64,000 nucleotides of DNA from Macrostomum hystrix (taxonomy: Eukaryota; Animalia; Platyhelminthes). Of the stretch, positions 23,147 through 56,860 are shown one piece after another; the first letter of the stretch is position 1, and each line of letters opens with the position of its first letter. Under the pieces are notes generated by a model, which did no database searches, was not told the origin of the DNA, and saw only the letters and a list, made by a program, of their open reading frames with translations. The translations under genes were made by a program, and so were the position numbers. Location of the stretch: positions 1,860,001-1,924,000 of the forward strand of contig CATNEN010000024.1 of the NCBI GenBank assembly GCA_950097015.1, given 5' to 3'.

Positions 23147-26100
23147 TTACGAATCGCTATCCTCGTCATCGACACTGCCACCGCCTCCGCTGGCGCCGCC
23201 ACGCTGACCACCGTCGGCTTTGATCAGTCGCTCCATGCTGACTTCGCGACGATCGACACCGTCCAGCGGACCGCGTCTGGCGTGATAGCGACCGAGTATG
23301 AGGGCCAGGCTGAGGGCGAACACAACTATGGCAAAGCCGTGCCAGGCGAATATAACAGTGGCCAGCATTATGCTGTCGTGCTCGGCGCTGGCGACTTGAA
23401 AGCGGCGCAGCCAGGGCAGCGGAGGATACAGCATGGCGCCCACCTGCGGAATTGTTAGCAGAGTTTACTGGTGTGCATTGCAGATCGGATATTACAGGTG
23501 TTAATTACAGATGGGATATTACAGGTGTGCATTACAGTTAGGATATTGCAGGTGTGGATTGCAATTAGGATATTACAGGTGTGCATTACAGATTGGATAT
23601 TACAGGTGTGTATTGCAGATCGGATATTACAGGTGTGCATTACAGTTGGGATATTACAGGTGTGCATTACAGTTAGGATATTAAAGGTGTGCATTACAGT
23701 TGGGATATTACAGGTGTGCATTACAGATAGGATATTACAGGTGTGCATTACAGATAGGATATTACAGGTGTGCATTACAGTTAGGATATTAAAGGTGTGC
23801 ATTACAGTTAGGATATTACAGGTGTGCATTACAGATAGGATATTACAGGTGTGCATTACAGATAGGATATTACAGGTGTGCATTACAGTTAGGATATTAA
23901 AGGTGTGCATTACAGTTAGGATATTAAAGGTGTGCATTACAGTTAGGATATTAAAGGTGTGCATTACAGTTAGGATATTACAGGTGTGCATTACAGATAG
24001 GATATTACAGGTGTGCATTACAGATAGGATATTACAGGTGTGTATTACAGATAGGATATTACAGGTGTGCATTACAGATAGGACATTACAGGTGTGCATT
24101 ACAATTAGGATATTACAGGTGTGCATTACAATTAGGATATTACAGGTGTGCATTACAATTAGGATATTACAGGTGTGCATTACAGATAGGATGTTACAAG
24201 TTTGCATTACAGATGGGACATTACAGGTGTGCATTACAGATAGGATATTACAGGTGTGTATTACAGATAGGATATTACAGGTGTGCATTACAGATAGGAT
24301 ATTACAGGTGTGCATTACAGATAGGATATTACAGGTGTGCATTACAGATAGGATATTACAGGTGTGCATTACAGATAGGATATTACAGGTGTGCATTACA
24401 GTTAGAATATTACAGGTGTGCATTACAGATAGGATATTACAGGTGTGCATTACAGATAGGATATTACAGGTGTGCATTACAGATAGGATATTACAGGTGT
24501 GCATTACAATTAGGATATTGCAGGTGTGCATTACAGATAGGATATTACAGGTGTGTATTGCAGATCGGATACTACAGGTGTGCATTACAGTTAGGATATT
24601 ACAGGTGTGCATTACAGTTAGGATATTAAAGGTGTGCATTACAGTTAGGATATTACAGGTGTGCATTACAGTTAGGATATTGCAGGTGTGCATTACAGTT
24701 AGGATATTGCAGGTGTGCATTACAATTAGGACATTACAGGTGTGCATTACAGATAGGATATTACAGGTGTGCATTACAATTAGGATATTGCAGGTGTGCA
24801 TTACAGATAGGATATTACAGGTGTGTATTGCAGATCGGATATTACAGGTGTGCATTACAGTTAGGATATTACAGGTGTGCATTACAGTTAGGATATTAAA
24901 GGTGTGCATTACAGTTAGGATATTACAGGTGTGCATTACAGATAGGATATTACAGGTGTGCATTACAGATAGGATGTTACAAGTTTGCATTACAGATGGG
25001 ACATTACAGGTGTGCATTACAGATGGGATATTACAGGTGTGCATTACAGATAGGATATTACAGGTGTGCATTACAGATAGGATATTACAGGTGTGCATTA
25101 CAGATAGGATATTACAGGTGTGCATTACAGATAGGATATTACAGGTGTGCATTACAGATAGGATATTACAGGTGTGCATTACAGATAAGATATTACAGGT
25201 GTGCATTACAGTTAGGATATTAAAGGTGTGCATTACAGTTAGAATATTACAGGTGTGCATTACAGATAGGATATTACAGGTGTGCATTACAGATAGGATG
25301 TTACAAGTTTGCATTACAGATGGGACATTACAGGTGTGCATTACAGATAGGATATTACAGGTGTGTATTACAGATAGGATATTACAGGTGTGCATTACAG
25401 ATAGGATATTACAGGTGTGCATTACAATTAAGATATTGCAGGTGTGCATTACAGATAGGATATTACAGGTGTGCATTACAGATAGGATATGACAGGTGTG
25501 CATTACAGTTAGGATATTACAGGTGTGCATTACAGTTAGGATATTACAGGTGTGCATTACAGTTAGGATAATAGGCAGTCAAGCAGTCGGCTACTGAAAT
25601 TTAAATATTTGCCTTCAATTCAGTGGCCCACCGTGGCATCAATTAGCCTCACCTGTATAAACCAGGTGCCCTGCAGAGTGGTGAAGAAGCAGCGAGCCAG
25701 AGCCGGCAATGGGTTCCGCGGACTGCGCAGTTCAAGCAGCAGGGCCAGGACGCAGCTCCAGACTGCGTACACCAGCAGCGTGTGCAGCACCACGTCGATC
25801 TAGACAGCGCAGTAAAACAATTACAAATTGAAAAATGTAATTGGGATCTATGAATTTGCCGCATACTACTAATAATAATATTTTCAAGAGGGCTGCTGGC
25901 AAAATGGCATATCATTTTGGTGACACTAGACCCTCAGCCAGCGATGAGGCAATTCTGCCAATTCCGCTGACTCCTGAGAACACACGCACACAGACACTGT
26001 ACGCAGGCACACACTCACGCAGGTGTGTACATCTGCCATGACTATCTCGTCGTCGGGTAGTGTACAATCACTGTACCTTGGAGATTGGCCCTTAAATTGC

Positions 26101-26730: not shown

Positions 26731-27896
26731 GACTGCTGTTTGGCTGGCTGAAAACCATAAGTCAAATTTCCATGTGCACTAAAAAGTAAAAGCATGTGCT
26801 ATTTTTAATCACTAGCAACTTTAATGTTATTTGCTTAACCCTGCTAAACAAATCTTTTTTTACTGAAAGGATATAAATAACCCTAATGGAGCCAATTTAA
26901 AAAAGCTGCGGACACTCCTGCTAGGCGCGCAGGTGCACAGTTGTTTTCAAGAAAAAGAGTGCAAATCCGCAATTGCTATATATCTTCAGTCTGACTCAAT
27001 GTAGTAATTGATTTCTAAAAAATGTTGAAAGACCTTTTTTTGATTGCCGTAGTGTATTTCTATAATTAGAACAGCTAAGGTTGTCTTTTCACACTCGGGC
27101 ACTGCGGAGCATGTATATGTGTAGGGGCACAAGGGTGCACTGTTTGTTATACATCTACATACTTCCGACAACTTTACACACACAAGGCGCAGCCGCGTGG
27201 ACAGGAAATTCTTTCTGCGCATCCAATTTTTCACAAGTGCGCCGGACGCTGTCCACAAAAACCCTTATTGGCTCCAATAGGGATCAATCACCTCTATTTG
27301 CAGTATGAGTTTTATGATTAGATAAGCTTTTTAATGTACACTTACAAAAAACAAAGAACAAACAAGTAGCAAGAAATGATGAGGTTTTATACTATCTCAG
27401 CAATATCATAATTGATAATTTTTTTAAAGTTTTAGTTGGCCTAAATAACTAATAAACTAGCAAAAAAAGTTGCATTTTATCTACTTTACAACCAAAAAAT
27501 GTTCTGATAAGCTTTAACTTAAAGTAGCTAATCTACATTAAGAAAATGATCATTCTTAGCAGCTGGCTAACTAAACTAGCCTAGAAAAAAATATATAGAG
27601 CCTATAACAGTAGCTATAAAGCAAGATAGTATAAGACTATAATCTATATTTAAGGGTATGTGCAACAAGGACTTATATGTTGATTTATATATATAAAGGC
27701 CAATTTCTAACCCTATTGAAATAATTTGACAAATTGCATCCGACCATTTGTTGAATTTTCTGACTTTTTTGTGTCAGTTGAGTTGCAGAGTGTCGCAACC
27801 ACATCGCTACACAGTGTTGCATTGTTAGGTTAGGCTAAAACACTGGTTAGGATAATATTAGCATTCTATGTAGTGTCCCAGTTTCAAGCCATATTT

Positions 27897-28367
27897 ACGT
27901 CTATACTTCCAGTACCAGAACCAGTACCAGAACCAGTACCAGAAAAAAATTATGTTATAGCCAACAAAAAATCGACAAGCAACTAATAAAAAGACTTCTA
28001 ACAGATGAAATACTTATATATCGGTCCGAAAATATCATTATTGAGAATAAAATTAATAAATATCGACGGACTTGCGCACAACACACAAAGAATCGTTTAC
28101 TTTCACAAAACGTTTTCTAATATATGTTTTTCATAGAATAAAACAAATTTGCTCAACCAACTAAGTAAACGAATACAAAAAGCGGTTTACTAAATATCGC
28201 AACTACTAAAATAACAACTCAAAACTCACCTCATTAAATGTGTTTGTATAATTTATTATTTTTATAATCATCGTAAACTTCATCAAAAAAACTAAAAATA
28301 TAACCTCACTTTTGCGCTTCGCAGGATTATTACTCGTACATGATATACAGCTGAGAGCAATGATAAG
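27897..28367 (+). repeat. Left TIR, unique outer part (~470 bp) with three 12-bp subterminal repeats CCAGTACCAGAA (27909-27944)
   Basis: Reverse complement of about 43037-43506, with only a few substitutions or indels seen. Confidence 0.95.
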
Positions 28368-31300
28368 GAAGGAAACATTATCTGTGAACACGGCTGTAAA
28401 ATTTCAGAGCCCTGACTAGTCGCGTCTCGGAGTTGTAGACCCTCGAGTCCCCCCCACTCTGATATCTCCCATTTTAAAAGTACTTTTCGTCACCTCACTG
28501 AATCTGGTGGTCAGACGAGGCTGAAAACTCAGATCTGGAAGGAAACATTATCTGTGAATACGGCTGTAAAATTTCAGAGCCCTGACTAGTCGCGTCTCGA
28601 AGTTGTAGACCCTCGAGTCCCCCCCACTCTGATATCTCCCATTTTAAAAGTACTTTTCGTCACCTCACTGAATCTGGTGGTCAAAAAAAGCTGAAATCTC
28701 AGATCTGGAAGGAAACATTATCTGTGAACACGGCTGTAAAATTTCAGAGCCCTGACTAGTCGCGTCTCGGAGTTGTAGACCCTCGAGTCCCCCCCACTCT
28801 GATATCTCCCATTTTAAAAGTACTTTTCGTCACCTCACTGAATCTGGTGGTCAGACGAGGCTAAAAACTCAGATCTGGAAGGAAACATTATCTGTAAACA
28901 CGGCTGTAAAATTTCAGAGCCCTGACTAGTCGCGTCTCGGAGTTGTAGACCCTCGAGTCCCCCCCACTCTGATATCTCCCATTTTAAAAGTACTTTTCGT
29001 CACCTCACTGAATCTGGTGGTCAGACGAGGCTGAAAACTCAGATCTGGAAGGAAACATTATCTGTGAATACGGCTGTAAAATTTCAGAGCCCTGACTAGT
29101 CGCGTCTCGGAGTTGTAGACCCTCGAGTCCCCCCCACTCTGATATCTCCCATTTTAAAAGTACTTTTCGTCACCTCACTGAATCTGGTGGTCAGACGAGG
29201 CTGAAAACTCAGATCTGGAAGGAAACATTATCTGTGAATACGGCTGTAAAATTTCAGAGCCCTGACTAGTCGCGTCTCGAAGTTGTAGACCCTCGAGTCC
29301 CCCCCACTCTGATATCTCCCATTTTTAAAGTACTTTTCGTCACCTCACTGAATCTGGTGGTCAAAAAAAGCTGAAATCTCAGATCTGGAAGGAAACATTA
29401 TCTGTGAACACGGCTGTAAAATTTCAGAGCCCTGACTAGTCGCGTCTCGGAGTTGTAGACCCTCGAGTCCCCCCCACTCTGATATCTCCCATTTTAAAAG
29501 TACTTTTCGTCACCTCACTGAATCTGGTGGTCAAAAAAAGCTGAAAACTCAGATCTGAAAGGAAACATTATCTGTGAACACGGCTGTAAAATTTCAGAGC
29601 CCTGACTAGTCGCGTCTCGGAGTTGTAGACCCTCGAGTCCCCCCCACTCTGATATCTCCCATTTTAAAAGTACTTTTCGTCACCTCACTGAATCTGGTGG
29701 TCAGACGAGGCTGAAAACTCAGATCTGGAAGGAAACATTATCTGTGAACACGGCTGTAAAATTTCAGAGCCCTGACTAGTCGCGTCTCGGAGTTGTAGAC
29801 CCTCGAGTCCCCCCCACTCTGATATCTCCCATTTTAAAAGTACTTTTCGTCACCTCACTGAATCTGGTGGTCAGACGAGGCTGAAAACTCAAATCTGGAA
29901 GGAAACATTATCTGTGAACACGGCTGTAAAATTTCAGAGCCCTGACTAGTCGCGTCTCGGAGTTGTAGACCCTCGAGTCCCCCCCACTCTGATATCTCCC
30001 ATTTTAAAAGTACTTTTCGTCACCTCACTGAATCTGGTGGTCAAAAAAAGCTGAAATCTCAGATCTGGAAGGAAACATTATCTGTGAATAACGTTCTAAA
30101 ATTTCAGAGCCCTGACTAGTCGCGTCTCGAAGTTGTAGACCCTCGAGTCCCCCCCACTCTGATATCTCCCATTTTAAAAGTACTTTTCGTCACCTCACTG
30201 AATCTGGTGGTCAAAAAAAGCTGAAATCTCAGATCTGGAAGGAAACATTATCTGTGAACACGGCTGTAAAATTTCAGAGCCCTGACTAGTCGCGTCTCGG
30301 AGTTGTAGACCCTCGAGTCCCCCCCACTCTGATATCTCCCATTTTAAAAGTACTTTTCGTCACCTCACTGAATCTGGTGGTCAGACGAGGCTGAAAACTC
30401 AGATCTGGAAGGAAACATTATCTGTGAATACGGCTGTAAAATTTCAGAGCCCTGACTAGTCGCGTCTCGAAGTTGTAGACCCTCGAGTCCCCCCCACTCT
30501 GATATCTCCCATTTTAAAAGTACTTTTCGTCACCTCACTGAATCTGGTGGTCAAAAAAAGCTGAAATCTCAGATCTGGAAGGAAACATTATCTGTGAACA
30601 CGGCTGTAAAATTTCAGAGCCCTGACTAGTCGCGTCTCGGAGTTGTAGACCCTCGAGTCCCCCCCACTCTGATATCTCCCATTTTAAAAGTACTTTTCGT
30701 CACCTCACTGAATCTGGTGGTCAAAAAAAGCTGAAATCTCAGATCTGGAAGGAAACATTATCTGTGAACACGGCTGTAAAATTTCAGAGCCCTGACTAGT
30801 CGCGTCTCGGAGTTGTAGACCCTCGAGTCCCCCCCACTCTGATATCTCCCATTTTAAAAGTACTTTTCGTCACCTCACTGAATCTGGTGGTCAGACGAGG
30901 CTGAAAACTCAGATCTGGAAGGAAACATTATCTGTGAATACGGCTGTAAAATTTCAGAGCCCTGACTAGTCGCGTCTCGAAGTTGTAGACCCTCGAGTCC
31001 CCCCCACTCTGATATCTCCCATTTTAAAAGTACTTTTCGTCACCTCACTGAATCTGGTGGTCAAAAAAAGCTGAAATCTCAGATCTGGAAGGAAACATTA
31101 TCTGTGAACACGGCTGTAAAATTTCAGAGCCCTGACTAGTCGCGTCTCGGAGTTGTAGACCCTCGAGTCCCCCCCACTCTGATATCTCCCATTTTAAAAG
31201 TACTTTTCGTCACCTCACTGAATCTGGTGGTCAGACGAGGCTAAAAACTCAGATCTGGAAGGAAACATTATCTGTAAACACGGCTGTAAAATTTCAGAGC

Positions 31301-34014
31301 CCTGACTAGTCGCGTCTCGGAGTTGTAGACCCTCGAGTCCCCCCCACTCTGATATCTCCCATTTTAAAAGTACTTTTCGTCACCTCACTGAATCTGGTGG
31401 TCAGACGAGGCTAAAAACTCAGATCTGGAAGGAAACATTATCTGTAAACACGGCTGTAAAATTTCAGAGCCCTGACTAGTCGCGTCTCGGAGTTGTAGAC
31501 CCTCGAGTCCCCCCCACTCTGATATCTCCCATTTTAAAAGTACTTTTCGTCACCTCACTGAATCTGGTGGTCAGACGAGGCTGAAAACTCAGATCTGGAA
31601 GGAAACATTATCTGTGAATACGGCTGTAAAATTTCAGAGCCCTGACTAGTCGCGTCTCGAAGTTGTAGACCCTCGAGTCCCCCCCACTCTGATATCTCCC
31701 ATTTTAAAAGTACTTTTCGTCACCTCACTGAATCTGGTGGTCAAAAAAAGCTGAAATCTCAGATCTGGAAGGAAACATTATCTGTGAACACGGCTGTAAA
31801 ATTTCAGAGCCCTGACTAGTCGCGTCTCGGAGTTGTAGACCCTCGAGTCCCCCCCACTCTGATATCTCCCATTTTAAAAGTACTTTTCGTCACCTCACTG
31901 AATCTGGTGGTCAGACGAGGCTAAAAACTCAGATCTGGAAGGAAACATTATCTGTAAACACGGCTGTAAAATTTCAGAGCCCTGACTAGTCGCGTCTCGG
32001 AGTTGTAGACCCTCGAGTCCCCCCCACTCTGATATCTCCCATTTTAAAAGTACTTTTCGTCACCTCACTGAATCTGGTGGTCAGACGAGGCTGAAAACTC
32101 AGATCTGGAAGGAAACATTATCTGTGAATACGGCTGTAAAATTTCAGAGCCCTGACTAGTCGCGTCTCGGAGTTGTAGACCCTCGAGTCCCCCCCACTCT
32201 GATATCTCCCATTTTAAAAGTACTTTTCGTCACCTCACTGAATCTGGTGGTCAGACGAGGCTGAAAACTCAGATCTGGAAGGAAACATTATCTGTGAATA
32301 CGGCTGTAAAATTTCAGAGCCCTGACTAGTCGCGTCTCGAAGTTGTAGACCCTCGAGTCCCCCCCACTCTGATATCTCCCATTTTTAAAGTACTTTTCGT
32401 CACCTCACTGAATCTGGTGGTCAAAAAAAGCTGAAATCTCAGATCTGGAAGGAAACATTATCTGTGAACACGGCTGTAAAATTTCAGAGCCCTGACTAGT
32501 CGCGTCTCGGAGTTGTAGACCCTCGAGTCCCCCCCACTCTGATATCTCCCATTTTAAAAGTACTTTTCGTCACCTCACTGAATCTGGTGGTCAGACGAGG
32601 CTGAAAACTCAAATCTGGAAGGAAACATTATCTGTGAACACGGCTGTAAAATTTCAGAGCCCTGACTAGTCGCGTCTCGGAGTTGTAGACCCTCGAGTCC
32701 CCCCCACTCTGATATCTCCCATTTTAAAAGTACTTTTCGTCACCTCACTGAATCTGGTGGTCAAAAAAAGCTGAAATCTCAGATCTGGAAGGAAACATTA
32801 TCTGTGAATAACGTTCTAAAATTTCAGAGCCCTGACTAGTCGCGTCTCGAAGTTGTAGACCCTCGAGTCCCCCCCACTCTGATATCTCCCATTTTAAAAG
32901 TACTTTTCGTCACCTCACTGAATCTGGTGGTCAAAAAAAGCTGAAATCTCAGATCTGGAAGGAAACATTATCTGTGAACACGGCTGTAAAATTTCAGAGC
33001 CCTGACTAGTCGCGTCTCGGAGTTGTAGACCCTCGAGTCCCCCCCACTCTGATATCTCCCATTTTAAAAGTACTTTTCGTCACCTCACTGAATCTGGTGG
33101 TCAGACGAGGCTGAAAACTCAGATCTGGAAGGAAACATTATCTGTGAATACGGCTGTAAAATTTCAGAGCCCTGACTAGTCGCGTCTCGAAGTTGTAGAC
33201 CCTCGAGTCCCCCCCACTCTGATATCTCCCATTTTAAAAGTACTTTTCGTCACCTCACTGAATCTGGTGGTCAAAAAAAGCTGAAATCTCAGATCTGGAA
33301 GGAAACATTATCTGTGAACACGGCTGTAAAATTTCAGAGCCCTGACTAGTCGCGTCTCGGAGTTGTAGACCCTCGAGTCCCCCCCACTCTGATATCTCCC
33401 ATTTTAAAAGTACTTTTCGTCACCTCACTGAATCTGGTGGTCAGACGAGGCTGAAAACTCAAATCTGGAAGGAAACATTATCTGTGAACACGGCTGTAAA
33501 ATTTCAGAGCCCTGACTAGTCGCGTCTCGGAGTTGTAGACCCTCGAGTCCCCCCCACTCTGATATCTCCCATTTTAAAAGTACTTTTCGTCACCTCACTG
33601 AATCTGGTGGTCAAAAAAAGCTGAAATCTCAGATCTGGAAGGAAACATTATCTGTGAATAACGTTCTAAAATTTCAGAGCCCTGACTAGTCGCGTCTCGA
33701 AGTTGTAGACCCTCGAGTCCCCCCCACTCTGATATCTCCCATTTTAAAAGTACTTTTCGTCACCTCACTGAATCTGGTGGTCAAAAAAAGCTGAAATCTC
33801 AGATCTGGAAGGAAACATTATCTGTGAACACGGCTGTAAAATTTCAGAGACCTGACTAGTCGCGTCTCGGAGTTGTAGACCCTCGAGTCCCCCCCACTCT
33901 GATATCTCCCATTTTAAAAGTACTTTTCGTCACCTCACTGAATCTGGTGGTCAGACGAGGCTGAAAACTCAGATCTGGAAGGAAACATTATCTGTGAACA
34001 CGACTGTAAAATTT
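28368..34014 (+). repeat. Left-arm satellite array, 170-bp unit, 33 full copies plus a partial
   Basis: GGAAACATTA recurs every 170 nt from 28371 to 33981. Confidence 0.98.
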
Positions 34015-34496
34015 TTCAAGTTTGTGGAAGAATCTGAAAAAGGAGGTTTTGAAGGAGCTATTGTTTCTGTAGTTTTTTTTTCGTTTTTTCAGTTTGTTTC
34101 GATTTAGCCTAATATAATATAAGTTTTTCTTTTGGTATATTTTTCGTGAGCCCTCCTCTTTTTGAAACCAGGCTTGGGACTGGCTTAGGCAGAGTTTTTC
34201 ACAAAGTCTTTAATACATTTTTAGTTTTAGTTTTTTGTAAGATTTTTGTTTTTTTAAGCGTTTTGTTGGTTTTAGTGTTTTTGTTTCACACAAAAGCCAA
34301 TATTTACGAGTAGATAAGTCTTACAATATTTTGCAGCTTAGATTATTCACAGTTTTACATGCAAACCGGTGGTATAATTTTTTACAGAATTGACTTGTCC
34401 TTATTAAAAAACTACAGATTTGACATTTCATTTTTAAGCAAGTAGCTTTTAGTAATTAGTTTATTTTTTCACTGCACTCTTGGTGCATCCATCCAG

Positions 34497-36020
34497 CTAT
34501 CGCGTTGCTGCGTACTCGGCGCAGCAGCAGACGTAGCCGTTGGACGCGTGGCGCTGGTGCATATCTTTCGATGCACACTCATGGTGCAGCCATGAATCAC
34601 AAAGATCACATTGCAGCCAAGTTCCAGTCGCACTGGGTTCAGCTTCATGACAGCGAACGCACGAGTTGGTGGATTCTTCATTTTCTCTTTCCAAGTCTTT
34701 CCAGATGCAGATTCGAGCTCTGTTAAGAAATCCCTCCGTCGTTGGAAAGCACAAAGCTCGGAACTCGGTATCAACGGATGTTACTAGAACTTTCGCGTAC
34801 AGACAGACAAATACACCACAGCTATGACCATCAAACTGCAATGATCTCAACATTGATTTATTTTTATACGTACCTAAAATTTCTGGCATGTCTTCGCGAA
34901 TACTGGCGGTGCTTTGGATTAGGTTTTGCCATAGTTTTATAAAATGTTTTGGTATCGACTTATCTGAGATAGGTTTTGTGTCTAGGACAGCTAATTCTTT
35001 GCGTGTTGTGTCAATATAGACTAAGTAGAAGTGGTCGTTCTGAAGGATCGGACAGATCAAACGGGTGCATTTGTTTGAAACTGTCGCTCTTAGCATTTCA
35101 ATTGCAGCGCTCGAATCTCCTTTGCGAATGCAGCTAAAGAAGCTAGATGGTAGGTGGCCCGCTTTGCTGTTTGGGTTGCATACGCAAAGTAGATGTATGA
35201 ATGAATTTACTACTCCGACAGAAAGCCACTTTCCGGGTTCCAATGATTGTCTATCAAACTCAGTTAGGAAATCTCCAGCGCGGGTGCACCACACCTGTTC
35301 CCGTTCTGCTGTGCCTTGCTGCTTTCTATTCTTTGTCGCTGATTCTGTTCTCTGTCGCTTGTACTTTGAACGACTAACCCGCTCGGCCCTTCGCCACTCC
35401 TCGCGAGAAAAAGAAATATCTTCGTGCTTTCTCTTCCTTCCAGATAAAGTTGCTTTTCCCACTTTGTTGATTATGTCAAAGGCTGTTAATCTTGTTTTTA
35501 AATATTTTAACCGTCCGCAAATAAAACTCGACACGTTCACCCTGGAAGCCTTGCCGAACCTTGTTTTTCGAGATTTAACGTCAGAAAAGTACGATTCTAC
35601 ATAAGAGTTTGAAAACCAACTTTTATTCTTTCTGAAGCTCTTGATACTCCCGATGAAATGGCAGAACAATGGAGCTAAACTACACCAGTGCTTCAGCAAG
35701 TAAACCAGAAGTTTTGGTGAGTAATAGCTTTTAAATGGCCCGGCTGGCTCGTCGGTTGCATCAATACTTGCCTGTCGGGACTTAAAAAGAAAAATGTACG
35801 GAGAGCTTTCGCGCAGAGAAGCAAATCGAGAACTTTCGGCCTGCTCTTCCTTATTGTTATTTATTTCATCGTCGTTGTAGAGCAAATATTCTTCGTCCAC
35901 GGGCTCAGTTTCCCAATTGTTAATCGCTGATCTTAATTCTTTCGGATCTCGCTGCCCTAAAAATGTATCTACAGTCAGACTCAAGGTAGTTTCAAACGCT
36001 TCAAAAGTCTCCTGATGCAA
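34497..36020 (-). CDS. C-terminal part of the transposase polyprotein: third catalytic Glu, Ulp1/SENP (C48)-type cysteine protease and PHD finger
   Basis: FSNSYVESYFSDVK (MULE N-x2-E motif); WLSVGVVNSFIHLL, ILQNDHFYLVYID, VLDT and LQFDGHSCGVFVC (His-Asp-Gln-Cys of C48 proteases); CVRC...WLQCDLCDSWLHHEC...YVCCC (PHD-like C4HC3). Confidence 0.9.
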   Translation of the reverse strand: MHQETFEAFETTLSLTVDTFLGQRDPKELRSAINNWETEPVDEEYLLYNDDEINNNKEEQAESSRFASLRESSPYIFLFKSRQASIDATDEPAGPFKSYYSPKLLVYLLKHWCSLAPLFCHFIGSIKSFRKNKSWFSNSYVESYFSDVKSRKTRFGKASRVNVSSFICGRLKYLKTRLTAFDIINKVGKATLSGRKRKHEDISFSREEWRRAERVSRSKYKRQRTESATKNRKQQGTAEREQVWCTRAGDFLTEFDRQSLEPGKWLSVGVVNSFIHLLCVCNPNSKAGHLPSSFFSCIRKGDSSAAIEMLRATVSNKCTRLICPILQNDHFYLVYIDTTRKELAVLDTKPISDKSIPKHFIKLWQNLIQSTASIREDMPEILGTYKNKSMLRSLQFDGHSCGVFVCLYAKVLVTSVDTEFRALCFPTTEGFLNRARICIWKDLERENEESTNSCVRCHEAEPSATGTWLQCDLCDSWLHHECASKDMHQRHASNGYVCCCAEYAATR

Positions 36021-39000
36021 TAAAAAACGAATGCGCTAATAAATAATTCCCGCATAGCTTTACCTTCCGCAGTTTTAGACTTTAGTTGTATGCCATTAAT
36101 GAACGCACGGATTACGTGATTTGTGCAAATGAATGGAATCGTGTACTTGATTTGTTTCCCCATGCGTAACGCACAATGCGTATCAATAAGGTATTGCTCT
36201 AAGCTAGTGCCAAATGACTGGCATACCGAATGTAACATAGCCCAAGAGAAGTCCGTGACGATGACAGCGGGTAAATAGTCATGCGACATAATTGTACTGC
36301 TTGCTAGTGTGCCCAAATCTGCGCGGACAGAAAACAAAAAGTGTTGGATTGATTTGGTCCTATGCTCACTTGTTATCATTTCGGCCACAGGCACACCACG
36401 CGTCTGACCGTTATCGGAGGGCATTGTCAGCGAGTAAAGAAATATTTGGCTACCTGCGAAATTCATTCTCTTGAAAATGCTTCCAGTGGCATCTAGATGT
36501 AAAACACACTGCGGCCTACTTGTAACAAGTCTAAGCTGTCTTTCGAGGTACAGATGTACATGAAATGGATGGCGAGACACAGCTTGAATGTATCCGCGTA
36601 TACTCTTACTCTCTGTGTCTGTTTCGCTCAGTATTCGTTGCAAAGCAGCAATTTCGACTTCAACATTTTTATGCAGCCGTTCTTCTGCGGCCACCAACCG
36701 CTTCGCGTTTACCCGCCGAATGGCATCCAAATTTTTCGATCGAGAAAAATCATTTTCCTTTATCTCTTTATCTGTCATTTCCGAGAGTAGTCTATCATGT
36801 ACATCAGTTGGTGCTTCAGTTTCAAGTAGTTTTGCTATCCTTTCTGATTCTAATGGCGTCATTCTAGACATCGTTGGATGATTATGATTCTTCTCACCTT
36901 TAGAATTAACAACTACCTCCACAGGCTCATTTTCAGTTGGAAAATCTATAATTCTAAAATCGTGTACTATTTTGCATGCGGGATGCTGGCATAATGCGAC
37001 CTGTTTTACGAAATATTTTGGCTTTAGTGCTCTGAGATTTGGAAAGTTCACATATCGATTTTTAAATTTTAGAACACAGTTACTTGCTTCCACATTCAAA
37101 GAGCAATATTGTCGATAATTTTCACGAATGCAGTTTAGCCACCAAAGAGCGGTTCTCTGACATATCGAATGCATTTTTTCTCCCCGCCTGATAAAAAAGT
37201 TACTTTTCCACTGTCTCCAAGCTATTCGAAAATGAAAAATTAAATTAGTCATTGATTCGCTTTCACCACTCTCGAAATCAGCACCAACTTCAGCATTAGT
37301 AAAATCCCTTACTTCTGAATCATCACTCCCAGCATCATCACTCCCAGAAGCACTCATATCATCACTCCCAGCATCATCACTCACAGCATCATCTCTCCCA
37401 GCATCAACACTCCCAGCGTCATCACTCCCAGCATCAACACTCCCAGCGTCATCACTCCCAGCATCAACACTCCCAGCGTCATCACTCCCAGCTTCAACAC
37501 TCCCAGCGTCATCACTCCCAGCTTCAACACTCCCAGCGTCATCACTCCCAGCTTCAACACTCCCAGCTTCAACACTCCCAGCGTCATCACTCCCAGCATC
37601 AACACTCCCAGCGTCATCACTCCCAGCATCAACACTCCCAGCGTCATCACTCCCAGCTTCAACACTCCCAGCGTCATCACTCCCAGCTTCAACACTCCCA
37701 GCGTCATCACTCCCAGCATCAACACTCCCAGCGTCATCACTCCCGGCATCAACACTCCCAGCGTCATCACTCCCAGCATCAACACTCCCAGCGTCATCAC
37801 TCTCAGCGTCATCACTCTCAGCGTCATCACTCTCAGCGTCATCACTCCCAGCTTCAACACTCCCAGCATCATTACTCCCAGAATCACTCATATCATCACC
37901 ACCAGCATCATCACTTCCACGAGCAGGCCCCACAGAAGCAGCAACAGCACCACGGGCAGGCACAGCAGAAGCAGCAACAGCACGACGGGCAGGCACAGCA
38001 GAAGCAGCAACAGCACGACGGGCAGGCAGAACAGAAGCAGCAACAGCACGACGGGCAGGCACAGCAGAAGCAGCAACAGCACCACGGGCAGGCACAGCAG
38101 AAGCAGCAACAGCACCACGGGCAGGCACTGCAGAAGCAGCAACAGCACGACGGGCAGGCACAGCAGAAGCAGCAACAGCACCACGGGCAGGCACAGCAGA
38201 AGCAGCAACAGCACCACGGGCAGGCACAGCAGAAGCAGCAACAGCACCACGGGCAGGCACAGCAGAAGCAGCAACAGCACGACGGGCAGGCAGAACAGAA
38301 GCAGCAACAGCACGACGGGCAGGCACAGCAGAAGCAGCAACAGCACCACGGGCAGGCACTGCAGAAGCAGCAACAGCACGACGGGCAGGCACAGCAGAAG
38401 CAGCAACAGCACCACGGGCAGGCACAGCAGAAGCAGCAACAGCACCAGGGGCAGGCACAGCAGAAGCAGCAACAGCACGACGGGCAGGCACACCAGAAGC
38501 AGCAACAGCACCAGGGGCAGGCACAGCAGAAGCAGCAACAGCACGACGGGCAGGCACAGCAGAAGCAGCAACAGCACGACGGGCAGGCACAGCAGAAGCA
38601 GCAACAGCACCACGGGCATGCACAGCAGAAGCAGCAACAGCACCACGGGCAGGCACAACAGAAGCAGCAACAGCACGACGGGCAGGCACAACAGAAGCAG
38701 CAACAGCACCACGGGCAGGCACAGCAGAAGCAGCAACAGCACCACGGGCAGGCACAACAGAAGCAGCAACAGCACGACGGGCAGGCACAACAGAAGCAGC
38801 AACAGCACCTCGAGTGGATCTTACGACAGCAGATTTATGATAAGCAGTATTCTTACTTTTCGAAACAGAAGATTTTGACTTACCGAATATTTTACGCTGA
38901 TAATACAGCCAGACAACTCGACGGTTTTCAATAGTGTTCTTTGCTGAAAGCTTGCTCAGAATTTGCCCGCAAGCACCATAGGGACAGCGAAATGATTTGC

Positions 39001-39130
39001 GAAGGCACTCATCACTATAGTCTTCAAAATATTCAGGCGACAGTTCAAAAAAAGAAATGCGTCGATTGTGGGTTGCTTTGCAAATGCAGAAAATTGAAAG
39101 TAAAGCAATGATGCGAAGACTGAAAATCAT
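35981..39130 (-). CDS. N-terminal part of the MULE/NOF-type DDE transposase (Zn-finger-like DNA-binding domain, first two catalytic Asp, CxxH)
   Basis: CQHPAC...KNHNH (WRKY/GCM1-like finger); LHLDATGSIFK; FLYSL; PVAEMITSEH; IVTDFSWAML; FICTNH. Overlaps the downstream ORF by 40 nt in the -1 frame. Confidence 0.9.
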   Translation of the reverse strand: MIFSLRIIALLSIFCICKATHNRRISFFELSPEYFEDYSDECLRKSFRCPYGACGQILSKLSAKNTIENRRVVWLYYQRKIFGKSKSSVSKSKNTAYHKSAVVRSTRGAVAASVVPARRAVAASVVPARGAVAASAVPARGAVAASVVPARRAVAASVVPARGAVAASAVHARGAVAASAVPARRAVAASAVPARRAVAASAVPAPGAVAASGVPARRAVAASAVPAPGAVAASAVPARGAVAASAVPARRAVAASAVPARGAVAASAVPARRAVAASVLPARRAVAASAVPARGAVAASAVPARGAVAASAVPARGAVAASAVPARRAVAASAVPARGAVAASAVPARGAVAASAVPARRAVAASVLPARRAVAASAVPARRAVAASAVPARGAVAASVGPARGSDDAGGDDMSDSGSNDAGSVEAGSDDAESDDAESDDAESDDAGSVDAGSDDAGSVDAGSDDAGSVDAGSDDAGSVEAGSDDAGSVEAGSDDAGSVDAGSDDAGSVDAGSDDAGSVEAGSVEAGSDDAGSVEAGSDDAGSVEAGSDDAGSVDAGSDDAGSVDAGSDDAGSVDAGRDDAVSDDAGSDDMSASGSDDAGSDDSEVRDFTNAEVGADFESGESESMTNLIFHFRIAWRQWKSNFFIRRGEKMHSICQRTALWWLNCIRENYRQYCSLNVEASNCVLKFKNRYVNFPNLRALKPKYFVKQVALCQHPACKIVHDFRIIDFPTENEPVEVVVNSKGEKNHNHPTMSRMTPLESERIAKLLETEAPTDVHDRLLSEMTDKEIKENDFSRSKNLDAIRRVNAKRLVAAEERLHKNVEVEIAALQRILSETDTESKSIRGYIQAVSRHPFHVHLYLERQLRLVTSRPQCVLHLDATGSIFKRMNFAGSQIFLYSLTMPSDNGQTRGVPVAEMITSEHRTKSIQHFLFSVRADLGTLASSTIMSHDYLPAVIVTDFSWAMLHSVCQSFGTSLEQYLIDTHCALRMGKQIKYTIPFICTNHVIRAFINGIQLKSKTAEGKAMRELFISAFVFYCIRRLLKRLKLP
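37320..37910 (-). repeat. 15-bp minisatellite (reads GSDDA/GSVDA/GSVEA in the transposase frame)
   Basis: Plus-strand unit ACTCCCAGCGTCATC / ACTCCCAGCATCAAC. Confidence 0.95.
37920..38810 (-). repeat. 33-bp minisatellite, about 27 copies (reads AVAASAVPARR/G in the transposase frame)
   Basis: Plus-strand unit CACAGCAGAAGCAGCAACAGCACCACGGGCAGG. Confidence 0.95.
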
Positions 39131-39695
39131 GGTTAAAAATACGCTCGTATATTGATATACTAGCAGACGATTGAAATCAGCTTTTCTGAAGGCTTTATAC
39201 TCGAGAATTTATGCATGGCTTGTTCGGATAGGGATATGAGATAGCAAGCAAAAAGCATATAAAGCAGCTGATTGGATAGCCCAGCTACTAGTGTAAAACA
39301 GAGCACGGTACACACCCAAGTACACTTATTTTGTCAGGCATTAAATTAGCAATAAAGCATAAGGACAAAGCACTAATAACTAAATGCAATAGAGGATAAG
39401 CAATCGACACTATAAAATTCGAAGCAACATGCACACATGAGGCTTGAAATCTCAACACTCAACTTCAAACGCTAAAGCCTCAAAAGCCGACAAACATAAG
39501 AGGGCATTAGTACTTCAAAGAATAAAAAACAATAGCAAAAACCAGATCCAACATGCAAAATAAAGACCTATGTGCACGACAAGGCAAAAAATTATCCTGC
39601 ATTACCAATTGCGCAATACATCTCAACACTTCACGCAACTCAACGCTGACAATACGCAGGCATCTCAGAGTGAGGGTGTTGTATTGTGCCCACTA

Positions 39696-42600
39696 TAAAA
39701 TGGGAGATATCAGAGTGGGGGGGACTCGAGGGTCTACAACTCCGAAACGCGACTAGTTAGGGCTCTGAAATTTTACAGCCGTGTTCACAGATAATGTTTC
39801 CTTCCAGATCTGAGTTTTCAGCCTCGTCTGACCACCAGATTCAGTGAGGTGACGAAAAGTACTTTTAAAATGGGAGATATCAGAGTGGGGGGGACTCGAG
39901 GGTCTACAACTCCGAGACGCGACTAGTCAGGGCTCTGAAATTTTACAGCCGTGTTCACAGATAATGTTTCCTTCCAGATCTGAGTTTTCAGCCTCGTCTG
40001 ACCACCAGATTCAGTGAGGTGACGAAAAGTACTTTTAAAATGGGAGATATCAGAGTGGGGGGGGACTCGAGGGTCTACAACTCCGAGACGCGACTAGTCA
40101 GGTCTCTGAAATTTTACAGCCGTGTTCACAGATAATGTTTCCTTCCAGATCTGAGTTGTCAGCCTCGTCTGACCACCAGATTCAGTGAGGTGACGAAAAG
40201 TACTTTTAAAATGGGAGATATCAGAGTGGGGGGGACTCGAGGGTCTACAACTCCGAGACGCGACTAGTTAGGGCTCTGAAATTTTACAGCCGTGTTCACA
40301 GATAATGTTTCCTTCCAGATCTGAGTTTTCAGCCTCGTCTGACCACCAGATTCAGTGAGGTGACGAAAAGTACTTTTAAAATGGGAGATATCAGAGTGGG
40401 GGGGACTCGAGGGTCTACAACTCCGAGACGCGACTAGTCGGGGCTCTGAAATTTTACAGCCGTGTTCACAGATAATGTTTCCTTCCAGATCTGAGATTTC
40501 AGCTTTTTTTGACCACCAGATTCAGTGAGGTGACGAAAAGTACTTTTAAAATGGGAGATATCAGAGTGGGGGGGACTCGAGGGTCTACAACTCCGAGACG
40601 CGACTAGTCAGGGCTCTGAAATTTTACAGCCGTGTTCACAGATAATGTTTCCTTCCAGATCTGAGTTTTCAGCTTTTTTTGACCACCAGATTCAGTGAGG
40701 TGACGAAAAGTACTTTTAAAATGGGAGATATCAGAGTGGGGGGGACTCGAGGGTCTACAACTCCGAGACGCGACTAGTTAGGGCTCTGAAATTTTACAGC
40801 CGTGTTCACAGATAATGTTTCCTTCCAGATCTGAGTTTTCAGCCTCGTCTGACCACCAGATTCAGTGAGGTGACGAAAAGTACTTTTAAAATGGGAGATA
40901 TCAGAGTGGGGGGGACTCGAGGGTCTACAACTTCGAGACGCGACTAGTCAGGGCTCTGAAATTTTACAGCCGTATTCACAGATAATGTTTCCTTCCAGAT
41001 TTAAGTTTTCAGCCTCGTCTGACCACCAGATTCAGTGAGGTGACGAAAAGTACTTTTAAAATGGGAGATATCAGAGTGGGGGGGACTCGAGGGTCTACAA
41101 CTCCGAGACGCGACTAGTCAGGGCTCTGAAATTTTACAGCCGTGTTCACAGATAATGTTTCCTTCCAGATCTGAGATTTCAGCTTTTTTTGACCACCAGA
41201 TTCAGTGAGGTGACGAAAAGTACTTTTAAAATGGGAGATATCAGAGTGGGGGGGACTCGAGGGTCTACAACTCCGAGACGCGACTAGTCAGGGCTCTGAA
41301 ATTTTACAGCCGTGTTCACAGATAATGTTTCCTTCCAGATTTGAGTTTTCAGCCTCGTCTGACCACCAGATTCAGTGAGGTGACGAAAAGTACTTTTAAA
41401 ATGGGAGATATCAGAGTGGGGGGGACTCGAGGGTCTACAACTCCGAGACGCGACTAGTCAGGGCTCTGAAATTTTACAGCCGTGTTCACAGATAATGTTT
41501 CCTTCCAGATCTGAGTTTTCAGCCTCGTCTGACCACCAGATTCAGTGAGGTGACGAAAAGTACTTTTAAAATGGGAGATATCAGAGTGGGGGGGACTCGA
41601 GGGTCTACAACTCCGAGACGCGACTAGTCGGGGCTCTGAAATTTTACAGCCGTGTTCACAGATAATGTTTCCTTCCAGATCTGAGTTTTCAGCTTTTTTT
41701 GACCACCAGATTCAGTGAGGTGACGAAAAGTACTTTTAAAATGGGAGATATCAGAGTGGGGGGGACTCGAGGGTCTACAACTTCGAGACGCGACTAGTTA
41801 GGGCTCTGAAATTTTACAGCCGTGTTCACAGATAATGTTTCCTTCCAGATCTGAGTTTTCAGCCTCGTCTGACCACCAGATTCAGTGAGGTGACGAAAAG
41901 TACTTTTAAAATGGGAGATATCAGAGTGGGGGGGACTCGAGGGTCTACAACTCCGAGACGCGACTAGTCAGGTCTCTGAAATTTTACAGCCGTGTTCACA
42001 GATAATGTTTCCTTCCAGATCTGAGTTGTCAGCCTCGTCTGACCACCAGATTCAGTGAGGTGACGAAAAGTACTTTTAAAATGGGAGATATCAGAGTGGG
42101 GGGGACTCGAGGGTCTACAACTCCGAGACGCGACTAGTCAGGGCTCTGAAATTTTACAGCCGTGTTCACAGATAATGTTTCCTTCCAGATTTGAGTTTTC
42201 AGCCTCGTCTGACCACCAGATTCAGTGAGGTGACGAAAAGTACTTTTAAAATGGGAGATATCAGAGTGGGGGGGACTCGAGGGTCTACAACTCCGAGACG
42301 CGACTAGTCAGGGCTCTGAAATTTTACAGCCGTGTTCACAGATAATGTTTCCTTCCAGATCTGAGTTTTCAGCCTCGTCTGACCACCAGATTCAGTGAGG
42401 TGACGAAAAGTACTTTTAAAATGGGAGATATCAGAGTGGGGGGGACTCGAGGGTCTACAACTCCGAGACGCGACTAGTCGGGGCTCTGAAATTTTACAGC
42501 CGTGTTCACAGATAATGTTTCCTTCCAGATCTGAGTTTTCAGCTTTTTTTGACCACCAGATTCAGTGAGGTGACGAAAAGTACTTTTAAAATGGGAGATA

Positions 42601-43037
42601 TCAGAGTGGGGGGGACTCGAGGGTCTACAACTCCGAGACGCGACTAGTCAGGGCTCTGAAATTTTACAGCCGTGTTCACAGATAATGTTTCCTTCCAGAT
42701 CTGAGTTTTCAGCTTTTTTTGACCACCAGATTCAGTGAGGTGACGAAAAGTACTTTTAAAATGGGAGATATCAGAGTGGGGGGGACTCGAGGGTCTACAA
42801 CTTCGAGACGCGACTAGTCAGGGCTCTGAAATTTTACAGCCGTATTCACAGATAATGTTTCCTTCCAGATCTGAGTTTTCAGCCTCGTCTGACCACCAGA
42901 TTCAGTGAGGTGACGAAAAGTACTTTTAAAATGGGAGATATCAGAGTGGGGGGGACTCGAGGGTCTACAACTCCGAGACGCGACTAGTCAGGGCTCTGAA
43001 ATTTTACAGCCGTGTTCACAGATAATGTTTCCTTCCT
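39696..43037 (-). repeat. Right-arm satellite array, same 170-bp unit inverted, about 19.6 copies
   Basis: TAATGTTTCC recurs from 39792 to 43023 (19 x 170 + 1 nt from one extra G). Confidence 0.98.
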
Positions 43038-43506
43038 TATCATTGCTCTCAGCTGTATATCATGTACGAGTAATAATCCTGCGAAGCGCAAAAGTGAGGT
43101 TATATTTTTAGTTTTTTTGATGAAGTTTACGATGATTATAAAAATAATAAATTATACAAACACATTTAATGAGGTGAGTTTTGAGTTGTGATTTTAGTAG
43201 TTGCGATATTTAGTAAACCGCTTTTTGTATTCGTTTACTTAGTTGGTTGAGCAAATTTGTTTTATTCTATGAAAAACATATATTAGAAAACGTTTTGTGA
43301 AAGTAAACGATTTTTTGTGTGTTGTGCGCAAGTCCGTCGATATTTATTAATTTTATTCTCAATAATGATATTTTCGGACCGATATATAAGTATTTCATCT
43401 GTTAGAAGTCTTTTTATTAGTTGCTTGTCGATTTTTTGTTGGCTATAACATAATTTTTTTCTGGTACTGGTTCTGGTACTGGTTCTGGTACTGGAAGTAT
43501 AGACGT
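43037..43506 (-). repeat. Right TIR, unique outer part with three inverted 12-bp subterminal repeats
   Basis: Reverse complement of 27897-28367. Confidence 0.95.
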
Positions 43507-45394
43507 CCATATTTTTATACCCATGTTGCATGTCCACAGGTTTTTGACATTTATTCCAAAAGGGATTTCTAAAAATGAGCCATCATAAATTTTATTAGCT
43601 CTTTAAGCAATAATTCATATGATAGGCTTCCCTTTTAACCTTTTAGTAAGCCTATAGCTAGCTATAGCATAATTAATAGCCATCTTATCTTCTGTTCTAC
43701 TCTAGGGCCTATATCATTGCCATTGTAAATAAGATTTAAGAAATGCTTTAGGGTTAGTATAGAGCTACACAAAAACAATGAGCTTTCCTTTGCAAAGCAA
43801 TCACATTAGGCCTAGAATTCTATTTGCTAAAGAAATAGAGCAGATATACTGACAATAGCTAGGCCCTAGTATAGCAGCCAGCTTAGGTTAGCTAGGGCCT
43901 AGCTAGCTACATAGGTCCAATTCATGTAGCCTGTAGCTGACTAGCTGTAGTTGTAGCTAGAAAAGTTGATTTCTAGAGTTCACTTCATAATCACTTTAAT
44001 CAATTGACAATTGGTCACGACAGAATGCCGCATCTTCAAGAACCAAGTAGTGCCTCATATTAAGGGATACATTTTTGCCAATAGGCCTAGGCTAACTGCC
44101 GTTTTAATTTGTCCTTGTGCTAGGTTTAGTACAAAGATTAGGCCTACCCTATTTAATTATTATTTGTACTAGTGAATTGGATCATTGGAGACATGAATCA
44201 AATTCATTGCCAATTGAAATACATTAAGCCTACAGAGATGGCGATCACCATGTACAGGTGATTATCTCTGAAACTACTAGTCCAATTTGGTAGGAATTTG
44301 ACACGGTATCATATCTCGGCTGCTGTATGGAGAATATAAAGTTTCGACACTCCGAGTTTGTTTAATTTTATAGAGTTTTTGATTCATCGAATATCAATCT
44401 GAATATCCATGGGGAAACATTATATTTTACAATACGAAGCCTTATAAATAAAAAAGAACATGTTCTCGGAACAAAGAACATGTTCGGAGTTGCCTATTAG
44501 GCGACCGTCGCGCATGTTCGATGTAGCCTAAAGTCGTTAATACTGATCTTCAGGCAAGTCCGGATATTTTTGTGAAATGTTTTGACTCTGCGCTAAAATT
44601 ATCACAGCGATTGCCTACCTTGATTAAAAGATGCGGATTAATTTTTCGTCTCAACAAAAAAATGCTTTTCTGCGAAAGCTAGATTTAAAATTCCGTGCTT
44701 AACCGGGACTATTCTTCGTTAAACTGTTAGATTCTTTTTTCCCTTTTTACTTTTAACAGCCTTAGTTGAAGCTAAGCACGTGAGTCCCAAACGTTGGATA
44801 AGGTCACAGATGAGAAGCTATAGCATGTGTTTCTGAACAGGCAATCAATTACCCCGCTCCCAATCCTGCATTGTCAAGTGAAATATTTTCAAACAATTTT
44901 TTTGCCCTAAATTTCTTAGAAATTCAAACAATGTTATTCATTGTTACCCATTGGACACATTTTCAAAAAATAAGTATTGTCTATAGGAACCGCTCTGGTT
45001 TTCTGACAAATTTTTTTAAACCGACAACAAAGAACATACACACAAGCCGACTGGGATATCTTTTGTGACACCTGGGCGAAAAATCCTAAAAGTACTCTGT
45101 ATTCAGCTTGCATTCCAATGTGTTTTTTCCTAGAAATATCACTTTATTTCTAAAAATCGTGACTTTTCACAGAGGGTCAAAACATTTTTTTCATTTATGC
45201 TAACGTCTGAGTAATATCAATAATAATAATAATAACTATTGTGCAAGAACTTTTTTCTTCTTAATGAATGATTCCGCATTGGTGTGTTTCACAACCCCAT
45301 TTCCAGGCATCCAAGTATAAATTGTACTTTGTTAACTCAACTTGACTTACTTATCGTCATTTTGATGCCTTTACTACAAAAATATTTGAACCCT

Positions 45395-53110: not shown

Positions 53111-53894
53111 TGCCGCTTCTTCAAAGCCTTCTCTCTATTCTCATTTTATTAGTGAAGGGAGGTCTGGGCTAGGTTGAGACTCGAGTCAGTCCTCCCGCGT
53201 CTCTGCACTAGATTTAGTATCCACGCTGAGTAGGGAAGGAAGGGATTGGTAAATGATGAGCCCAGCTGCTCCACTTCAATCGGCCCTGTCCCTCTTCCTT
53301 CGCTCTGCGTGTCCTCCTCACCCCCAGCATTTCAGCTGCAGCAGCTGCAAGGGAGGCACCAATGAATGCGGTGGCACTTTTCATATTTTGAAGAATGGGA
53401 CGACCCGGTGCATCAGGAGGGTCATTAGGCCAATTTTTTAGTGCTTCTCCTTTAGGCGGGGTAGGCGTGCGGGGAAGAATGAAGTGGGTAGTGAGGCGAA
53501 CGACTTTTCCCCCTGGAGTTTGAGCCGCTCTGGTATGGCTGGGGCTATTTGCTTATTGCAACCATTTCCAAAACTGGACTCAAGAAGGGATCAACTTTTA
53601 GACTGCAGAAATGATAGTAGTGGAATCGAGATGCCGTATTCTTCCATAGCCAGGGCGATGGAAACCAATCCGGAGTTTGAAACTGAAGTGTTCCCCTAAA
53701 TCCCTACTCAGAATACACACTATTCCGATCACTTCTCGCAGTTACTTCCTGTACTGAGGGGCTGTAGCTCTCTCTCCGCATGTCTTCCAGAAGAAAAACT
53801 TGAGCCTATTCAGAATTAAACTGGCAATTTAAAGCTAAACTTAAAGTTGGAACTAAACAATGAAAAATCTAGCAAACTCAATTTAGCAACCTCC

Positions 53895-54366
53895 TTAATC
53901 TAGCTACCTGTTCAATCTAGCTACCTGTTCAATCGAGCTACCTGTTCAATCTAGCTACCTGTTCAATCGAGCGACCTGTTCAATCTAGCTACCTGTTCAA
54001 TCTAGCTACCTGTTCAATCTAGCTACCTGTTCAATCTAGCTACCTGTTCAATCTAGCTACCTGTTCAATCTAGCTACCTGTTCAGTCTAGCTACCTGTTC
54101 AATCTAGCTACCTGTTCAGTCTAGCTACCTGTTCAATCTAGCTACCTGTTCAATCTAGCTACCTGTTCAATCTAGCTACCTGTTCAATCTAGCTACCTGT
54201 TCAATCTAGCTGCCTGTTCAATCTACAGTAGTTACCTCTTCAATCTAGCTACCTGTTCAATCTACAGTAGTTACCTCTTCAATCTAGCTACCTGTTCAAT
54301 CTAGCTACCTGTTCAATCTAGCTGCCTGTTCAATCTACAGTAGTTACCTCTTCAATCTAGCTACCT
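53895..54366. repeat. 17-bp minisatellite TCAATCTAGCTACCTGT
   Basis: Direct inspection; a variant unit with ACAGTAGTTACCTC appears near the right end. Confidence 0.95.
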
Positions 54367-56329: not shown

Positions 56330-56860
56330 TCAATCCATTTCCGAATCGCGACTAATCCATTTCCGAATCTTGATAACCCGCTTCCGAATCTCGAGAAAAC
56401 CATTTCCGAATCGCGACAATCCATTTCCGAATCTCAAGAAATCCAATTCCGAATCTCGACAATCCATATCCGAATTTCAACAATCCATTTCCGAATCTCG
56501 ACAATTCATTTCCGAATCTCGATAATCCGTTTCCAAATCTCGATAAGCCGTTTCCGAATCTCGATAATCCGTTTCCGAATCTCGAAAATCCATTTCCGAA
56601 TCTCGATAATCCGTTTCCAAATCTCGATAAGCCGTTTCCGAATCTCGATAATCCGTTTCCGAATCTTGATAATCCATTTCCGAATCTCGATAATCCGTTT
56701 CCAAATCTCGATAAGCCGTTTCCTAAACTCGAGAAAACCATTTCCGAATCTCGAGAAAACCATTTCTGAATCTCGAGAAAACCATTTCTGAATCTCGAGA
56801 AAACCATTTCTGAATCTTGAGAAAACCATTTCTGAATCTTGATAATCCATTTCCAAATCC
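56330..56860. repeat. 21-bp minisatellite TTTCCGAATCTCGATAATCC(A/G)
   Basis: Direct inspection; gives the GNGLSRF / DYRDSET seven-residue pseudo-ORFs. Confidence 0.93.

Follow-up and report, generated by a model that had tools for sequence, protein, structure and literature searches.

The window analyzed here is a stretch of 64,000 nucleotides from the flatworm Macrostomum hystrix (contig CATNEN010000024.1, positions 1,860,001 to 1,924,000 of the forward strand), and it contains a structurally complete transposon of 15,610 bp at positions 27897-43506 of the window, both ends of which were read and compared by script. Two inverted arms, each made of a unique terminal inverted repeat (TIR) and an array of a 170-bp satellite, enclose a coding core with a transposase gene on the minus strand. 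We put the probability that the element is a cut-and-paste Mutator-like DNA transposon of the Foldback/NOF-Rehavkus group with satellite-bearing arms at about 0.85. The 14-bp terminus ACGTCTATACTTCC starts at 27897, and its reverse complement ends at 43506. When the terminus is taken at a length of 22 nt, it is found at two sites in the window, which are the two ends of the element, with 0 expected by chance. Direct reading of the flanks gave an 8-bp target-site duplication (TSD), CCATATTT, at 27889-27896 and at 43507-43514 (no strand assigned). All 8 bases are exact on both sides of this single insertion (n = 1), and a 9-bp reading fits nowhere. Comparison of the two ends delimited a unique TIR of 470 bp on each side (27897-28366 on the plus strand and 43037-43506 on the minus strand, the latter also covered by contigs over 43506/43507), and the two copies are identical at 468 of 470 positions (2 mismatches, 99.6% identity). 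In addition to the terminus, each TIR carries three exact 12-bp subterminal repeats of CCAGTACCAGAA (27909-27944 and 43459-43494), which are likely candidates for transposase-binding sites. The perfect inverted termini, the 8-bp TSD and the near-identical TIRs of ~470 bp with three 12-bp repeats per end, all claimed in an initial annotation of this DNA, were recovered in full.

Inside the unique TIRs, Tandem Repeats Finder and an anchor-based split into units showed 33.2 units of a 170-bp repeat in the left arm (28367-34014, plus strand) and 19.65 units of the same repeat, inverted, in the right arm (39696-43036, minus strand), where 33 and ~19.6 opposed units had been counted before. The units match each other at 96-97%. 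With the unique ends included, the arms measure 6,118 bp (left) and 3,811 bp (right), and the arrays make up 8,989 of the 15,610 bp of the transposon (57.6%, against an earlier estimate of ~58%). Read from the outer to the inner end, the unit variants run ABCDEFGHIJKABJABCLDBCDEFIJKABIJKM in the left arm and ANGOIPMQOIJRSTJOUVA in the right arm. Within the left arm, stretches of 1,147 bp and 1,006 bp recur exactly, offset by 18 and 16 units; here whole blocks of several units have been duplicated. Variants A, G, I, J and M are common to both arms, with only the outermost unit in register, and on both sides the unit next to the unique TIR is variant A. At their inner ends, the arrays break off within a unit, after 38 nt in one arm and 110 nt in the other. 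Since the variant order and the inner phase differ between the arms, these results indicate that each array evolves separately from the other and changes far faster than the unique ends, which differ at 2 of 470 positions; this fits unequal exchange or slippage. An origin of the 170-mer from the unique TIR, in the manner of the Drosophila element Tetris, was rejected, as local alignment scores were equal to those of shuffled controls. The core of the 170-mer was not found in viral contigs.

The core between the arrays measures 5,681 bp, which bears out the 5.7-kb coding core of the initial annotation, but it holds two overlapping frames rather than a single intact open reading frame (ORF). An upstream ORF of 1049 amino acids (aa; 35981-39130) and a downstream ORF of 507 aa (34497-36020), both on the minus strand, overlap at 35981-36020, and a single base at an A6/T6 homopolymer run (36022-36027; the coding strand reads T6) puts them out of frame with each other. 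No other stops were found over ~1,550 codons. A unique 5′ spacer between the coding region and the right arm (39131-39695, minus strand) presumably holds the promoter and the 5′ untranslated region, and an AT-rich unique spacer lies 3′ of the coding region (34015-34496, minus strand). In a local phmmer comparison against fetched proteins, the long relatives P0002, P0004 and P0003 are colinear with both frames. Because these relatives carry both frames in one polypeptide, the ancestral gene was a single ORF of ~1,550 codons, and the present copy is frame-broken unless the shift is a homopolymer error. A 28-nt GT..AG intron linking both frames was considered and rejected, as it gives the wrong frame. 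Exact products of both frames were searched for and no contig was found. A search of Rfam over 27000-44500 returned 0 families.

The predicted ancestral protein is ordered as low-complexity repeats, a zinc-finger region, a DDE domain, a Ulp1/SENP-fold protease and a PHD-like finger, all encoded on the minus strand. In the upstream ORF, in-frame minisatellites (33 bp x27 and 15 bp x41, 37319-38809) encode ~500 aa of low complexity, and they are followed by a Cys/His zinc-finger beta-sheet region (from the C at 37076-37078 to the H at 36884-36886), the first D (36491-36493) and second D (36251-36253) of the DDE domain, and a CxxH motif (36116-36127). In the downstream ORF lie the catalytic-E motif SNSYVE (E at 35595-35597), the residues of the Ulp1/SENP-fold protease (H in 35016-35039, D in 34971-34991 and Q..C in 34809-34841) and a PHD-like finger (34512-34661). 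The frame break falls between the second D and the catalytic E. With the two Ds parted from the E by this shift, the copy as read cannot encode a full enzyme. The description of the element as near-intact therefore stands for its structure, which is complete, but not for its transposase frame. Either the copy has just been inactivated and is mobilized in trans, or the shift is a homopolymer assembly error.

When the repeat-free upstream frame was searched with full HMMER against 1.84 billion representatives, 796 relatives were found, the best of which share 33-37% identity. Named relatives are few and come from a sea cucumber, a mussel and a barnacle. The downstream frame gave no match in a word-indexed search, and its relationship was recovered by local phmmer; a sequence profile search of the PDB gave no match. 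In the family alignment of the upstream frame, D276 and D356 are invariant and C398/H401 are nearly invariant, with the first D in an LDATG-type and the second D in a TDFS-type context, and the Cys/His set in the four-stranded beta region is also invariant. The SNxxVE..F..VK motif of the downstream frame is invariant, including N138 and E142. A CxxH between the second D and the E, together with SNxxVE, is a signature of Mutator-like elements (MULEs) and of the IS256 family. The AlphaFold2 model of the upstream domain, with a predicted local distance difference test (pLDDT) score of 80.8, has its strands in RNase-H-type order; one D lies on beta1 and the other follows beta4. Its top Swiss-Prot match in Foldseek is Drosophila NOF (P16320, E 5e-18 over 429 aligned positions), with 17% identity and a template modeling (TM) score of 0.41 by query, both models being multi-domain predictions. 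NOF ranks first by ten orders of magnitude, and the next matches are K. lactis alpha3, FAR1/FRS/FHY3, ZSWIM3/9 and the IS1201 transposase. We take alpha3, FAR1/FRS/FHY3 and ZSWIM to be MULE-derived and IS1201 to be an IS256-family relative of Mutator. The Foldseek matches in the PDB were weak and consisted only of retroviral integrases and DDE transposases. ESM clusters, which serve as leads only, were MULE for the upstream part and ‘NOF-FB 120.7 kDa’ with C48 and PHD for the downstream part. Pfam matched Pentapeptide_2 on the low-complexity repeats, a match that was dismissed as an artefact of composition.

For the last 268 residues, the model (pLDDT 79.8) matches SENP5, SENP1, SENP2 and Ulp1, with TM scores by target of 0.65-0.81 and E values down to 6e-10. 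This copy has all four residues H, D, Q and C, of which H, Q and C do not vary across the family alignment. Judged by this model, the C-terminal part has a SENP/Ulp1 fold (peptidase C48, clan CE) and is a predicted protease, like the Ulp1-containing transposases that the initial annotation cites for FB-NOF and Rehavkus-type MULEs. The PHD-like finger has a C4HC3-like pattern that aligns with the PHD of the relatives, with a Pfam E value of 0.15 and low pLDDT in that part. The relatives variously carry PHD, C48, OTU or UCH domains, and some of them score on Pfam PHD.

We compared contigs from four other sequencing runs over 41400-45300, an interval that comprises ten units, the TIR and the flank; only assembler contigs were used. 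A 951-nt contig of run X6, which comes from a different study with the same organism code, covers 43423-44373 with 0 differences and bridges the right junction. A 933-nt contig of run X2 covers 43478-44410, also with 0 differences, and has 29 nt inside the TIR, just below the 31-nt rule for bridging. A contig of run X5 matches 43312-43506 exactly (195 nt) and then continues into a different flank, with the local flank uncovered, which pins the terminus to 43506 and reveals a further copy elsewhere. Run X5 is labelled as a different organism; this could mean a closely related organism or strain, or else that the element passed between species very recently, and its coverage is too low to decide. 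In run X1, the word depth was ~57-80 in the flank, ~1,460-4,140 in the TIR (~25-70x the flank) and up to ~120,000 in the 170-mer (~2,000x), depths which are a rough guide and not copy numbers. To an order of magnitude, they point to tens of TIR ends and thousands of 170-bp units, and rough arithmetic from the X1 depths gives ~5,000 units and ~24-69 TIR ends. Also in X1, after ~640 bp of single-copy flank, 44150-44540 has a short stretch of up to ~200x the flank depth with many loose ends and is probably an interspersed repeat.

In architecture, the element has what defines a foldback transposon, namely unequal tandem-repeat arms flanking a middle domain, here with a NOF-like protein. Most foldback elements belong to Mutator, and the architecture arose in more than one superfamily (PMC4079207). 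The TSDs of MULEs range from 8 to 11 bp (PMC6446971), and the 8-bp TSD is compatible with a MULE because it is inside this range. Together with NOF as the best structural match, the D..D..CxxH and SNxxVE motifs and the SENP/Ulp1 fold, the TSD upholds the Foldback-type Mutator identity that was proposed at the outset.

Among known systems, Rehavkus transposons are of the foldback type, and their long inverted termini carry subterminal tandem repeats that vary; the Tribolium members have up to 50 monomers and termini of >11 kb, and they gave rise to an 80-kb satellite (bioRxiv 10.1101/2024.12.02.626372). They are described as MULE-related, with a PHD finger, a minisatellite and a 9-bp TSD, in arthropod and annelid hosts (PMC6446971). 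Like Rehavkus (Rehavkus-1_TC and Rehavkus-3_TC, with the satellites TCsat23, TCsat12 and TfSat06/15/23/25), the present element has subterminal tandem repeats in long TIRs, a single transposase with a MULE-related DDE domain, and internal minisatellites, and through its C4HC3-like pattern it may share the PHD finger. The arm units are also close in length, at 170 bp here against 154 and 164 bp in Tribolium. Unlike the published Rehavkus, it resides in a flatworm, its arms differ in size, its unique TIR of 470 bp exceeds the tabulated 26-400 bp, and it encodes a Ulp1-fold protease, of which the Rehavkus descriptions make no mention. The likeness to Rehavkus was judged from published descriptions, and no match carried the Rehavkus name.

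The element resembles FB-NOF of Drosophila melanogaster in its top structural match, in its unequal foldback arms of tandem repeats and in the C48 and PHD domains of the NOF-named ESM cluster, whereas the identity over the structural alignment is only 17%. The arm repeats of FB consist of shorter units. FB-NOF is reportedly non-autonomous, going by the title of Badal et al. 2013. In Tetris of Drosophila virilis, the arms likewise consist of a terminal unique domain, ~220-bp tandem repeats and an inner domain; this element represents a transposon-to-satellite route in Drosophila with TSDs of 8-10 bp, and its repeats were amplified to a satellite (PMC4079207). In contrast to the present element, Tetris has no coding capacity and an unknown transposase, and its TIR-220 shares a 37-bp stretch with the terminal domain, while the 170-mer is unlike the unique TIR. 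With canonical MULEs (MuDR, Jittery and Hop, and the derived FAR1/FHY3 and ZSWIM), the element shares the RNase-H-fold DDE domain with CxxH and N..E, the upstream zinc-finger beta-sheet domain, the long TIRs and a TSD within 8-11 bp. Unlike them, it has diverged past the Pfam MULE model, lacks a SWIM finger, has a C-terminal fusion of Ulp1 with a PHD-like finger and has arms filled with satellite.

We also inspected the DNA around four transposase relatives of ~30% identity, taken from environmental and other assemblies. In the P0004 lineage, two contigs each show a 186/187-bp array of ~15 units (L002:8599-11476 and L001:14208-17143) that begins ~570 bp 3′ of the gene, and in the P0006 lineage a 174-bp array of 32 units lies 3.2 kb 5′ of the gene (L003:1-5582). 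No inverted partner of these arrays was visible within those contigs, and no such array or foldback architecture was seen in another P0006 contig (L004) or at the P0008 locus (L006). A relation of the 174- and 187-bp units to the 170-mer was rejected by sequence comparison. Unit lengths therefore recur at ~150-190 bp (170, 174 and 186/187 bp, and 154 and 164 bp in Tribolium) with unrelated sequences. This recurrence is a lead and not a finding, because satellites generally favor unit lengths of ~150-190 bp. It is unlikely that the arm arrays are a selected part of the transposon, with a nucleosome-scale period kept by selection, instead of passive cargo. If this were true, the Ulp1-type protease and the PHD finger could act on the chromatin of their own arrays, through SUMO or histone marks, and such action would allow excision or escape from silencing.

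Several observations weigh against assignment to the Foldback/NOF-Rehavkus group, or limit the evidence for it. The TSD of FB is 9 bp, and that of Rehavkus is also 9 bp, versus 8 bp in the single insertion read here. Pfam scores for C48 and PHD are below their cut-offs, and the last Cys pair of the PHD-like finger is CxC-like and not Cx2C. The RNA runs were essentially blank, with one run holding 0.07 of the words. The array lengths are as assembled and short-read contigs cannot verify them, and the empty allele (...CAAGCCATATTT joined directly to TTATACCC...) was not seen in the contigs, which cannot show its absence. Finally, the Pfam MULE model PF10551 did not match this protein and matched the family weakly (2 of 32 members, E 0.039). 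This miss is expected for the Rehavkus group, because Rehavkus is treated as an outgroup to the MULEs in the literature (PMC6446971).

The missing PF10551 score also bears on whether the element belongs to another superfamily, such as KDZ/Zisupton or, as in Galileo, a P-like one, and merely resembles FB. Ulp1 domains occur in KDZ-type transposases as well, and foldback architecture is not restricted to one superfamily (PMC4079207). However, Foldseek placed NOF far ahead of all other matches and after it returned only MULE-derived proteins and IS1201, the CxxH and SNxxVE motifs are present and the 8-bp TSD fits a MULE, which leaves another superfamily extremely improbable. Nor does the inverted arrangement look like an assembly fold-back, in which long reads of the satellite region were mis-joined. 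Inverted duplications of tandem repeats are known in long-read assemblies, and the interiors of the arrays lie outside the contig check. Yet the arms differ in copy number, unit order and inner phase, differences that argue against such an artefact; the arms are also separated by a unique 5.7-kb coding core, the whole is enclosed by an exact 8-bp TSD, and the right junction was reproduced without differences in contigs of other runs. An artefact of this kind is almost certainly not the explanation.

A third possibility is that a free 170-bp satellite existed beforehand and that the transposase gene landed in or beside it, in which case the arrays would be host satellite. The 170-mer depth of ~2,000x the flank in X1 means that free arrays may exist, and the 170-mer does not resemble the unique TIR. 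Against this, the opposed arrays lie inside the TIRs and the TSD, variant A adjoins the TIR on both sides, and the TIR is itself multi-copy, with ~24-69 ends versus ~5,000 units, and we regard a host satellite as very unlikely. The Mutator-like foldback transposon thus remains the preferred reading, and within it we weighed whether this copy is autonomous and active, with the break at 36022-36027 being a homopolymer sequencing error or bypassed. The break lies in a T6 run, a typical site of long-read indels, there are no further stops in ~1,550 codons, the TIRs are 99.6% identical, and none of the protease residues H, D, Q and C is missing. On the other hand, the sequence as given is shifted and the RNA evidence is negligible, and we hold an autonomous, active copy to be a real possibility that falls somewhat short of even odds.

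Upstream of the transposon, an ORF of 918 aa with PKD domains (8324-11077) is 70% identical to a Macrostomum lignano protein, with the next matches at 22%. This match places the genome among macrostomid flatworms; either the species is possibly another than M. lignano, or a paralogue was matched. The ORF belongs to a polycystin-like gene on the plus strand, which further comprises a PKD-channel/ion-transport exon at 19932-20933. In the region of this gene, 20000-20557 is a minisatellite (35 bp x16). The transposon was probably inserted into intergenic DNA ~7 kb downstream of the polycystin-like gene. At 23465-25570, a 27-bp unit is repeated 78 times; each strand has an open frame across it (700 and 673 codons), without a Pfam match. 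Unrelated minisatellites with units of 15-258 bp in tens of copies are found at 4526-5422, 51962-52993, 53878-54367, 56332-56859, 58114-58823, 59871-61485 and 63432-64000. That the window is so rich in minisatellites suggests that the whole genome is prone to tandem-array expansion.

The element is a fresh example of a known satellite-spreading route and not a new kind of element, as the seeding of satellites by transposition has already been published for Tetris (PMC4079207) and Rehavkus (bioRxiv 10.1101/2024.12.02.626372). In the mechanism we propose, the transposase would bind the terminus and the three 12-bp repeats, excise the whole 15.6-kb unit and reinsert it with an 8-bp staggered cut. 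The arrays would travel as cargo of the arms and would expand and contract separately in each arm through unequal exchange or replication slippage, and each insertion would deposit a ready-made satellite locus. The present copy provides a fully delimited reference: its termini are exact, it has a TSD, and both arms are there along with the entire coding region. It gives the terminus and the TSD length for a census of the family, and it extends NOF/Rehavkus-type foldback elements to a flatworm. For annotation, it means that a single mobile unit accounts both for ~9 kb that would be labelled ‘satellite’ and for a ‘hypothetical protein’. In this one element, the duplication of multi-unit blocks outpaces the divergence of the unique ends, and this fast turnover of the arms gives direct support to the published model in which satellite DNA originates in the arms of transposons and is carried along by them.

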